64,000 nucleotides of DNA from contig JAQFVV010000001.1 in the NCBI GenBank assembly GCA_028023455.1, positions 27,590,001 through 27,654,000 of the forward strand, written 5' to 3'. Position 1 is the first letter of the stretch, and every line of letters begins with the position of its first letter. The position numbers and the translations under genes were made by a program. The notes beneath the pieces were generated by a model that was not told where the DNA came from, ran no database searches, and saw nothing but the letters and a program-made list of their open reading frames with translations. Shown here piece after piece: positions 34,546-41,065 of this stretch. This DNA is from Epiperipatus broadwayi (Eukaryota > Animalia > Onychophora).

Positions 34546-34554
34546 ACTTACCTG
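34546..34554 (-). promoter_or_regulatory. 5' splice-donor consensus CAG|GTAAGT in the 5' UTR of B
   Basis: Perfect consensus. G at 34551 is at the same offset from the 5' motif as in element A. Confidence 0.5.
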
Positions 34555-34681
34555 TTTGTTTGAAGATGTTTAATAGTACTTTATACAAGTGTTGTATCTA
34601 TAGAAGATAATAAAATAAACAGTAAACTTTAAAAAACATTGGTTTTTCTAAGAGCCAAAAAGACGTGCTTGTGAGGCAGAG

Positions 34682-34691
34682 CGGCCATCTT
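34682..34691 (-). promoter_or_regulatory. YY1-type motif AAGATGGCCG at the 5' terminus of B
   Basis: Matches the YY1 consensus AAGATGGC(G/C) and the motif known near the 5' end of mammalian L1. Confidence 0.6.
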
Positions 34692-34756
34692 ACTACTACT
34701 ACTACTACTGCTGCGGCGGCAGCGGCAGTGACGACGACTACTACTACTACTACTAC
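34692..34756. repeat. (TAC)n spacer between A and B with a TGC/CGG/GAC variant core
   Basis: Seen directly. Confidence 0.95.
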
Positions 34757-34768
34757 TTTTCAAATAAC

Positions 34769-34774
34769 TTTATT
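34769..34774 (-). terminator. Poly(A) signal AATAAA of element A
   Basis: Lies 12 nt before the microsatellite junction. Confidence 0.65.
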
Positions 34775-35264
34775 AAGGAATCAAGGGTTACATAGCTTAT
34801 TACATATAGTATGATACACGGATTTGATACATTTAGTATCGTAACAGTGGTATAATGACATGTACATAAGAGACATGCAAAAAATATAAATGAGCATTAA
34901 AAAAAATTACTAAAAGAAATTATATATATACATGAGAAATTAAATGGACAATTAGTTACATCTTAAATTAGTGTACATAAAAAATATGCATAAGCATTAA
35001 AAATATTACTAAAAACAAAAATTATATATATATATACATGAGAGATTAAATGGACAGTCAGTTAAAAAAAAAGAATTACTAAAAATATATATATATAAAT
35101 AATATATATACATAAGAAATAATATGGACGGTCAGTTACTTCTTAAATTAGAGTACATCTATACAGAAAAAAATATCTTAAACTCGAGAACAATTATGTA
35201 AGTTTTTTCAGGTCTCTTTTAATCATCTCACTGGGTGACAAAAATGGGACATTATTACTTTGTG

Positions 35265-38200: not shown

Positions 38201-38659
38201 ATTTGAAGGTGAATTTAGAGTATGGCATATTAAAATCCCCAATCATGACTGTGGGAAAGGGATTGGTAGCTAGTATTGCTTTTATATTAGTGATTAGCTG
38301 ATAAATGAGACTTGGTTGACTGTATAAGTATACTAGGATAATGTTAATTGTGTAAGCTTGTTTATATAAAGTTGTTATGCACATATGCGAGTCAAGTATA
38401 GTATGTTTATTGATTGAAAAGGAGAAGCATGGTGATTGATAATTCCAACTCCTGCAGATGAGGTGTTAGAGTTGGAAAATCTATTAAATCCAAACCTCTG
38501 AAAGTATCGGTCAGGCTTGATTATTGAGTTTACCGATAATTTGGTTTCAGTGCATAGAATGAGATGCGGTTTGTATAGTTCAATCCAATTGGATATTGCA
38601 TAGATTCTTTGGAGAGAGTTTAACCCTCTGACATTAACCGCTACTATAGAAAAAAGCAT
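35265..38659 (-). pseudogene. ORF2 of element A (APE endonuclease + reverse transcriptase + C-terminal zinc finger), broken into at least 9 pieces
   Basis: APE motifs: VNVRGLN, LCTETK, SAGVGI, MIGDFN, SDH. RT motifs: LDIEADFDSI, IPQGSPLSALLF, FMDDIVVF, LKFNTGK, FLGIP, SIHSKTTLINMLILPKINY. C-terminal motifs: C..(HL)..EETMNHFLVNC and LW..RC..VFN. Confidence 0.92.
37900..37935. other. Assembly gap (36 N)
   Basis: N run inside ORF2 of A. Confidence 0.99.
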
Positions 38660-38929
38660 GTTAGTTGATTAGGAAGTTAGAGGAATGATACAACAAGGGC
38701 CATCAGCAAATGCCAATTGTAATATTTCTTCTAAGTTATTACTTATTGCACGTGTTATACCCATCAATAGAGTGTTTTTGAGGGTTTTAAGGACCTGATT
38801 ACCAACTATGGACCGGTTATGCTCCATAGCAAGGCAAAGGAAGAAGGAGTCCAAATAAATCAAATCGGCAAGCCAATAACAGATCATTAAGAATAACTGA
38901 TTCCATAGTGATAATAAAGTTTAGAATTG

Positions 38930-39618
38930 CTAGGTTATCTGGGCAGCTACAGATGAGTCACCCTTTGAGCCTCTGGAAGCTCTCCTATGTATGTCCACGC
39001 CTTCCTTGTAGACATCAAGTTGACTAACTTCATCAGAAGATTCCTGCATTGATTTTCTAGTACAATAAGGATTTTCAGTGTTGTCATTATTAACTGGGGA
39101 TGTGTTAGTTGCCTTCATTTTTTTCTTGACTGGTGCAGAAATTACACTTTGGTTCTTATTTTTAGGGGCTTGGTTAGCCTGATCCTTGTCACAGTTTGAA
39201 TTTTCACTGGGATCGACCTTTGGAATTGCTCCATTGTTTTTATTTTTTCTCTTGTTTTTGTTAGCATTTGGAAAAGAATTACTACTTTTAGTCATTGTTG
39301 ACATGGAGTCAGCAGAAGATTCTAAATGGTTAGTGGATTCTAGTGGACTGGCCTCACTCATGGATTGCTGATCAGTATTAAATGATGTTAGCAACCCAGC
39401 ACTACTTTTCATACTTGATTGTTGATCAGTGTTAAAAGAAGGTATAGACTCTGACCTGGTTTCAAAAGTGGATTTTAGGACTGTGTTATATGTTGTAAGA
39501 GAGCTGGTATTAGTATGTGAAATCATTGCCGAGTGTTTGTGTGTATTTGGTTCTTGGGTGGTAATTTGATTTGTTTGTGATACAATACAATTACCATTAT
39601 TTTTTTGTGGGTATGTGG
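38930..39618 (-). pseudogene. Frameshifted Ser/Asn/Lys-rich C-terminal part of ORF1 of A
   Basis: The frame of ORF 38930..39526 is open upstream to ~39620 and joins ORF 39619..41019 through one frameshift. It is homologous to the tail of B. Confidence 0.7.
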
Positions 39619-41016
39619 TTAGGTGTTTTTTGCATTTATATTATTTGAGCAGCCGTGTAGCTTGGTGATTTTGAATCCACATTTGTTACAATATTTATTA
39701 GGACAGTCGTTAACCAAATGCGTTCTAAGTTTGCATTCAAAACATTGAGGTGGAATGCCCCTAAACGTTATTACCAGTGGTGATGCCTCAGTGTCATGCA
39801 TCGTAGGAATGTCGTATGGAGTAATATCTTTTTTCATAATTAAACTAAATATTGCGGTGTTAGAAAATACGGGAATAACTGCTTTTCTGTGATTAAGATA
39901 TGAGAAATTTATAACTTTGCCATAATCTTTCATTAGCAACTGTAGATCAGCTTCATTAAAATCAACATGACAATTTTTAATTTTTCCATACAAATATAGG
40001 GGGAGACTGGTGTCAATGTAACAAATTATTTTTTCCCCCAGAAATTTAATGTGTTTTCGGAAGATTTGTTGTTGAGTCCTATTGTGGAACTCCAAACAAA
40101 GGTATCTGTTGTTCGGATGCGTTAGAACTTTATATATGTATGACCACAAATTCTTATCTGTTAACATCTGGTAGAATTCATCAAAAGGAAAATGACCAAG
40201 ATTGCATTTAGAATTAGTAACCGTCATAATGACGGTTTGATTGTTTTCGAATTTTTTGAACGAGTTAAGAAGACTAGCTGGTATTGTTTCATTAAATTTG
40301 GTATTAATTTGATTGTATGCTTCAGGAGTAATATTTTGAGGCTGTTCTTCTGTAGATTCATCATCTAAACAGCAAACTTCCATTTCATCATCAAGGCCCA
40401 TCACCTCTGCCAAAGAATCAGAAGTAGTAATACCACTGGCGATAGGCGATGAAGGGGAGGACCTAATGATTCTGGCATAAGTATTACTATTTTCATTAGG
40501 TGTTCTACTGTATATTGAGTTTTGTGAAAAGTGATTATTTTCTCTATTGTTATTTTGTACTTGAAATTGTTTCGTTGTTATAGGCTCTGATTTTGATTGA
40601 CTATTTTCCTTGTTTTCTTTCACTTGATCTTGACTCGCTATTGTAAGCTCTGGATATTCATGCTTGTTGTACATGAGCCCTCCTATTTTCGCATTTGATT
40701 GTATGGAGTTTATGAATAGTGACGAATTAATAGAATTTTGAGTTGTGTTGCCTGACGCGGAAACATTTAGCGTGTTGTTTCTAGGCCCTCGTATTTCTGC
40801 ATCAGAGTCAACATTAACTTCCAAATTTTCTGTGGAAAAGAGATCACGATTATTAATTGATTTAGTTGATACAGAATACATTTGGTTACTATGAACTAAA
40901 GATTGTGAATTTTGATTAATAGTAGGATGATTTAAGGTAGGATTAGATTTGGATTTTTCAATTTGGCCATTAGAAGCCGCCATTTGTAACGTATTTGATG
41001 GATCGTTGTAATCCAT
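39619..41016 (-). CDS. ORF1p of element A (gag-like, zinc knuckles)
   Basis: Open frame (ATG at 41016, preceded by TTG at 41019). It contains CFECKLRTHLVNDC (CCHC) and CNKCGFKITKLHGC, and shares LLNSFKKF, HPNNRYLCLEFH, ICYID and SPL.ITF.GI.PQCF with B. Confidence 0.88.
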   Translation of the reverse strand: MDYNDPSNTLQMAASNGQIEKSKSNPTLNHPTINQNSQSLVHSNQMYSVSTKSINNRDLFSTENLEVNVDSDAEIRGPRNNTLNVSASGNTTQNSINSSLFINSIQSNAKIGGLMYNKHEYPELTIASQDQVKENKENSQSKSEPITTKQFQVQNNNRENNHFSQNSIYSRTPNENSNTYARIIRSSPSSPIASGITTSDSLAEVMGLDDEMEVCCLDDESTEEQPQNITPEAYNQINTKFNETIPASLLNSFKKFENNQTVIMTVTNSKCNLGHFPFDEFYQMLTDKNLWSYIYKVLTHPNNRYLCLEFHNRTQQQIFRKHIKFLGEKIICYIDTSLPLYLYGKIKNCHVDFNEADLQLLMKDYGKVINFSYLNHRKAVIPVFSNTAIFSLIMKKDITPYDIPTMHDTEASPLVITFRGIPPQCFECKLRTHLVNDCPNKYCNKCGFKITKLHGCSNNINAKNT

Positions 41017-41056
41017 CAAAACAATAAAAGAATTATCTACAATAGCACAAGGGTTT

Positions 41057-41065
41057 ACTTACCCC
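41057..41065 (-). promoter_or_regulatory. 5' splice-donor consensus GGG|GTAAGT in the 5' UTR of A
   Basis: G at 41062. The nearest AG would give a 26-nt intron (41062-41037). Confidence 0.5.

Follow-up and report, generated by a model that had tools for sequence, protein, structure and literature searches.

The RNAs of long interspersed nuclear elements (LINEs) are A-rich and rich in poly(A) signals, and how these elements secure full-length transcripts is only partly understood. Parallels outside LINEs are offered by telescripting through the U1 small nuclear ribonucleoprotein (snRNP), reportedly treated by Oh et al. in 2017, and by the major splice donors of retroviruses, which keep a poly(A) site upstream of them or close by from being used. 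Among LINEs, the Tx1/L1-type elements Kibi, Koshi, Mino and Waldo target microsatellites. Here we describe two LINEs of Epiperipatus broadwayi, elements A and B, which lie next to each other in a 64,000-nt stretch of contig JAQFVV010000001.1 (hereafter the window) and carry the donor-like heptamer GGTAAGT at an identical distance from a common 5' terminal box.

Athanikar et al. reportedly described in 2004 that mammalian L1 carries a YY1 box at its 5' end. Almost all mammalian L1 elements start with a consensus, in which CAAGATGGC is a YY1 site required for correct initiation, and the 5' untranslated regions (UTRs) of different L1 families cannot be aligned beyond this terminal motif (PMC5381506). 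Frog L1 families have short motifs in common at fixed distances from the start, about +30 and +40, and L1 lineages have swapped their 5' UTRs repeatedly (PMC5381506). In human L1, a splice donor at +98 (G98U99) has been conserved among subfamilies and for 46 million years; it is mostly unspliced, and its mutation cuts the RNA about 5-fold (PMC5860796). This donor sits inside a RUNX3 site, mutation lowers promoter output, and the authors argue that RUNX3 is responsible (PMC5860796). Splicing of human L1 RNA does occur, to acceptors at positions 622 and 976, and gives the so-called SpIREs (Larson et al. 2018, PMC5860796).

Results

The window has a GC content of 26.6% and contains two non-LTR retrotransposons, A (41202 to 34757) and B (34691 to about 32275), head to tail in (GTA)n on the minus strand, as are all features below unless stated otherwise. 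Each element opens with a CAAGATGGC-type box of the form AAGATGGCSG that directly abuts (GTA)n, namely AAGATGGCGG at 41202-41193 in A and AAGATGGCCG at 34691-34682 in B. Counted from the A of the ATG within AAGATGG (41199 in A, 34688 in B), the G of the GT in a consensus-like splice donor lies 137 nt downstream in both elements (41062 and 34551, respectively), which agrees to the nucleotide with the initial annotation. The donors read GGG/GTAAGT in A (41057-41065) and CAG/GTAAGT in B (34546-34554; the slash marks the potential splice point), and the heptamer GGTAAGT is thus found at +140/+141 in each. Of the nine positions of the donor consensus MAG/GTRAGT, B matches all 9 and A 7, and the contiguous pairing with the U1 5' end extends over 9 bp in B and 8 bp in A. 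Sites of such U1 strength number only 9 in 128 kb (the window, both strands).

The two 5' UTRs are otherwise unlike each other. That of A measures 186 nt (41017-41202) and that of B, up to its first ATG, 217 nt (34475-34691), with the frame open from a TTG at 34510; the ORF1 start codons are at 41016 and 34474. Compared ungapped over 186 nt, the UTRs are 38.7% identical, and AAGATGGC and GGTAAGT are the only exact runs of at least 5 nt at the same offset, in line with the earlier statement that the intervening sequence has no evident similarity. A MAFFT alignment leaves the two donors unaligned to each other. When the B UTR was shuffled 200,000 times with its composition preserved, the probability of GTAAGT was 1.7e-4 at the exact offset and 1.8e-3 within +/-5 nt of it, and that of any shared run of at least 7 nt at equal offset was 0.019 per UTR pair. 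The sense strands are poor in G (13% in A, 10.5% in B), and GGTRAGT occurs once on each whole sense strand, at +140, against expectations of 0.23 (A) and 0.03 (B). In the window as a whole, GGTAAGT occurs 5 times on both strands together, against 4.8 expected. We also considered a depletion of other donors on the A sense strand and rejected it (1 observed, 1.27 expected). The RUNX core TGTGGT is absent at both sites, the contexts being GCAGTGGGGTAAGT in A and AACAGGTAAGT in B.

The terminal box of B (AAGATGGCCGC, 34681-34691) is of the YY1 type, and human L1 likewise starts with AAGATGGCCG. The corresponding first bases of A (C-AAGATGGCGGA, 41192-41203) are also YY1-type and match the end of the mammalian L1 consensus; the start of A, CAAGATGGCGGA, is identical to the end of that 5' consensus (PMC5381506). 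The box presumably acts as the initiator of each internal promoter, at which YY1 would bind. In light of the mammalian and frog L1 families introduced above, the combination of a common terminal box with unrelated UTRs has a precedent, and the elements here and the mammalian ones are alike in CAAGATGGCGGA, which opens A and closes the mammalian consensus, and in having UTRs that are unalignable past the box. They differ in that the box here comes directly after a microsatellite, with neither a G-run nor about 10 nt in front of it, and in that the host is very AT-rich and the lineage embedded in a microsatellite, which makes the YY1-type box an unexpected parallel. We rejected a reading in which AAGATGG begins a coding first exon that is then spliced, the frame being closed after 5 codons in A (ATG GCG GAC AAG CAG TAA) and after 19 in B. 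A further short likeness concerns CTGTGAGGCAG, just upstream of the donor in A (41079-41069), which is the reverse complement, at 10/11 positions, of CTGCCTCACAAG in B (34679-34668, +13 to +24); a shorter variant of A described below would place CTGTGAGGCAG about +26 from the box. The likeness may reflect a common factor site or be due to chance.

No usable acceptor with a pyrimidine tract precedes the ORF1 ATG in the 5' UTR of A or B. In A the first AG after the donor closes a 26-nt interval (41062 to 41037), as had been noted, and is the only AG before the ORF1 ATG; 26 nt is too short for an intron that animal spliceosomes could handle. The later AGs, at 167, 174 and 233 nt, all lie within ORF1. 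In B, for which the absence of an AG before the ORF1 ATG had also been noted correctly, the first AG comes 83 nt past the donor, at 34469, just beyond the ATG at 34474. Farther downstream, A has an acceptor-like TCTCTTTTCCACAG/ at 40830. The only strong acceptor-like site after the donor in B is TTTTCCTATTTTTTAG/ (32328-32307), about 10 nt before the 3' box, and splicing to it would join only the 5' 140 nt to the 3' end.

Three public sequencing runs (X1 to X3) contain parts of the stretch as contigs, which we compared over 35210-41202. The loose ends of X1 and X2 carry what we take to be the Illumina small-RNA 5' adapter, and these two runs are therefore small-RNA libraries. Contigs from the three runs, which are small-RNA or DNA-like and so uninformative on splicing, show no joint at 41062. 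A 972-nt contig of X2, from a second organism, is colinear with 40275-41202 through the site to the box, with 27 differences and 0 gaps. A contig of X3 agrees with A as far as 41093, beyond which it reads CCGCCATCTTG and a GCN repeat; it has the CCGCCATCTT box directly after 41093, and the box is therefore 99 nt closer, with the motif 38 and not 137 nt away. This length variant of 99 nt spans 41094-41192, with GT microhomology at the junction. The X3 run seems to contain both long and short forms of the 5' UTR, and the short copy may be a dead deletion derivative. Separately, the contigs of X1 and X2 pile up on ORF1 of A (40167-40424), where the summed depth in X1 reaches 227, a pattern suggestive of abundant piRNA- or siRNA-type small RNAs against family A.

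Additional copies of A or B were absent from the 64-kb window, and relatives were sought in public databases. Protein word searches with the whole ORF1 of A and with its N-terminal 200 aa gave no match, and exact-protein look-ups for both ORF1s were blank. An exhaustive search with a profile of the A and B ORF1 core returned only 7 weak matches from 1.84 billion protein representatives, the best of which (E 7.6e-10) is a zinc-knuckle repeat protein, and hence no close ORF1 relative. We examined the contigs of four of these matches, distant ORF1 relatives (L121-L124), leaving out P0002, a long spliced gene model; none of the four has GTRAGT or AGATGGC upstream of ORF1. A search of metagenome contigs for the (GTA)3-box pattern yielded 120 chance matches without protein relation, and the words of the donor context found nothing in public genome contigs and viral contigs.

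The predicted transcripts are rich in AATAAA, as the initial annotation had proposed, with 13 (A) and 10 (B) occurrences in sense against 6 and 6 in antisense; the first AATAAA after the motif comes at 1.36 kb in A and at 0.2 kb in B. In minimum free energy and centroid folds of B, the donor AGGTAAGT and its complement ACUUACCU 13 nt downstream form an 8-bp stem, and in the fold of A the motif lies in the loop of a 4-bp hairpin. The downstream arm in B RNA sense, ACTTACCT (34525-34532), is a perfect complement of the AGGTAAGT 13 nt upstream, so that the plus strand also carries AGGTAAGT at 34525-34532; ACTTACCT is also the sequence of the U1 snRNA 5' end. A conserved RNA structure was considered and rejected, with fold z-scores of 0.11 and -1.40 and a local geometry that differs between A and B. 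An Rfam search of 32000-41400 for known RNA families was blank.

As to the elements themselves, A adjoins a (GTA)n/(GCA GTA)n microsatellite upstream (41204-41273), and (GTA)n mixed with GCN triplets is found on both flanks of A and of B, forming the tail of A and the upstream flank of B at 34692-34756 and continuing as (GCA)3(GTA)n after the 3' end of B to about 32084. Their 3' ends are alike, with ATGTAACC followed by AATAAA and shortly afterwards by the repeat: in A the box and the AATAAA (34774-34769) lie within 34757-34793, with 34757 as the last base, and in B within 32275-32296, with the AATAAA at 32287-32282. ORF1 encodes 465 aa in A (39619-41016), with the CCHC knuckle near the C-terminus, and 513 aa from the ATG in B (32933-34474); the cores are 46-48% identical, and a knuckle of the form C-X2-C-X4-H-X4-C is readable in both. 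Both ORF1s are open, whereas the ORF2 of A, recognised through Pfam, is broken (36036-38384). Its decayed remains comprise an endonuclease part (38384-37848; Exo_endo_phos_2, 3.4e-08) and a reverse transcriptase part spread over three frames (37173-36036; RVT_1, 3.2e-14), the latter with weak PDB matches, to R2 reverse transcriptases only. In element B we found no ORF2. To judge from the sequence, A and B are two diverged members of one (GTA)n-embedded LINE lineage, L1/Tx1-like by its predicted domain set. They resemble elements of the Kibi, Koshi, Mino and Waldo type in their head-to-tail copies between one trinucleotide repeat and in their coding parts, namely an ORF1 bearing a CCHC knuckle, a reverse transcriptase and an endonuclease of the APE class; the repeat is (GTA)n in this case, and the likeness concerns the carrier element, not the motif.

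An assembly gap (37900-37935) falls in the endonuclease region of A. Neither 137-nt interval includes it and both motifs are over 3 kb away, and it therefore has no effect on the observation of equal offsets. At its edges, contigs of related copies continue with unlike letters at 37875/37899 and before 37936, with loose ends of 41, 26 and 44 letters; 0 contigs bridge the gap, and real sequence is missing there. Other repeats are a 129-nt tandem duplication in the C-terminal tail of B ORF1 (32998-33255; 81% identity), three repeats of 74-106 nt in the 3' UTR of A (34879-35158) and, outside the elements, a tandem duplication at 44317-46061 with a period of about 1306 nt and 82-86% identity. On the plus strand, a single-exon ORF of 328 aa at 56378-57364 has a weak match to the rhodopsin family (7tm_1, E 8.4e-4) and is a possible candidate for a G protein-coupled receptor gene.

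Discussion

We tentatively prefer to regard GGTAAGT as a promoter-proximal, unspliced U1-type site that has been retained in both families, like the +98 donor of human L1, an explanation that we hold to be possible and somewhat short of probable. The YY1-type box at +1, the presumed initiator of an internal promoter, would start a transcript on which U1 snRNP would bind GGTAAGT as the RNA emerges; productive splicing would not ensue, since no usable acceptor follows, and the bound U1 would favour full-length over prematurely terminated RNA in transcripts that are A-rich and AATAAA-rich. We infer U1 binding, and with it an effect on polyadenylation or transcription, from the equal offset, the rarity of the motif on G-poor strands, the complementarity to U1 and the richness in AATAAA, all of which would be consistent with such a role. 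By analogy, human L1 G98U99 and the fixed-position motifs of L1 5' UTRs may also lend it support (PMC5860796, PMC5381506), and the colinear X2 contig through the site may count for it as well.

Comparison with described systems is instructive in both directions. Like the human L1 donor, the sites in A and B lie about 100-140 nt from the 5' end and downstream of a YY1 box; unlike it, they have the full GTAAGT, no RUNX core and no shown acceptor, occur in two families and are known from sequence alone. A 5' UTR intron had been called unusual for LINEs in the initial annotation, which overstated the case given the 46 million years of conservation of the human +98 donor (PMC5860796). With telescripting and retroviral donors, A and B would have in common a strong site, un- or rarely spliced, early in a transcript with many poly(A) signals; the difference is that here U1 binding and poly(A) signal use are predictions from the DNA.

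Several points weigh against a retained U1 site. The motif was picked post hoc and only two independent families were compared. The X3 short form shows that the spacing between box and motif varies within family A, so that of the position constraint put forward earlier the equal offset in A and B stands, a hard constraint is weakened, and the 137-nt spacing is at most a soft one. The upstream regions of L121-L124 have neither the donor nor the box, and the public runs, being small-RNA or DNA-like, are unable to report splicing or U1 binding. The predicted hairpin of B can sequester the site and would compete with U1. Finally, for the human precedent the explanation given is the RUNX3 site at the DNA level and not U1 (PMC5860796).

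The post hoc choice and the very many comparisons made mean that chance remains a serious rival, and coincidence is in our view a distinct possibility: the UTRs would be unrelated past the terminal box, and a 7-mer that matches by luck would have been noticed for its donor look. Any run of at least 7 nt has a probability of 0.019 per UTR pair, and very many pairs were compared; outside the box and the 7-mer 57/171 positions match (33%), close to a chance estimate of about 30% for such a base composition. The altered spacing in the X3 variant of family A, the lack of an acceptor, of a junction in the small-RNA or DNA-like contigs and of deep conservation in L121-L124, and a local structure that differs between the stem of B and the 4-bp hairpin loop of A all fit coincidence too. 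Yet for this particular motif at this particular offset the probability is about 1e-4 to 1e-5 on such G-poor strands, and it is the sole GGTRAGT on either sense strand.

It is unlikely, in our estimation, that GGTAAGT (ACTTACC on the other strand) is instead a DNA-level promoter element, the site of a factor at a set distance from the box with an incidental donor look. An exact spacing would fit DNA architecture more easily than U1 binding, but we know of no transcription factor for the word GGTAAGT, which counts against such an element, as do the absence of a RUNX core at either site and the existence of a variant shorter by 99 nt. In its favour, LINE internal promoters with fixed-position motifs are documented in frog L1 (PMC5381506), and the human L1 donor lies within a RUNX3 site whose mutation lowers promoter output (PMC5860796).

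Still less likely is a relic of promoter capture, in which the 5' UTRs would derive from a host first exon, comprising the box, an exon of ~140 nt, its donor and the start of intron 1. A box followed by about 140 nt and a consensus donor does resemble a typical first exon, and 5' UTRs have been replaced repeatedly in L1 lineages (PMC5381506). However, equal length in two independent captures would again be coincidental, indels should have erased the spacing of a single old one during a divergence that has gone beyond alignment, and no host source was found. Least credible is the true 5' UTR intron that the initial annotation had entertained, running from the donor to the AG 26 nt on in A or to TCTCTTTTCCACAG/ at 40830 (A) and TTTTCCTATTTTTTAG/ at 32307 (B): donors of consensus strength, acceptor-like sites farther downstream and the spliced L1 RNAs of humans (PMC5860796) speak for it, but the interval in A is too short and in B the ATG comes before any AG. 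Use of the distant acceptors would remove the start of ORF1 or almost all of the element; among the contigs compared none has a joint at 41062, and that of X2 stays colinear with A across it.

Seen in two copies, the equal offset may be coincidence or signal, and it is intriguing. A more far-reaching form of the retained U1 site, which we consider doubtful, is that the box at +1 and the unspliced U1 site at ~+141 constitute a selected two-part module of the promoter region in an invertebrate, microsatellite-targeting L1/Tx1 lineage, where U1 would either shield a LINE RNA rich in poly(A) signals from premature termination or label a transcript lacking introns as 'gene-like'. That both elements open with a YY1-type box suggests that the start-site device of mammalian L1 is older and more widespread, or that it is convergent. 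A donor kept in two diverged families would point to U1, or to a promoter factor, as a host dependency of LINEs outside mammals, and would help to explain why human L1 retains its +98 donor; if the two-part module is real, the human donor would express a strategy general to LINEs rather than a side effect of the RUNX3 site.

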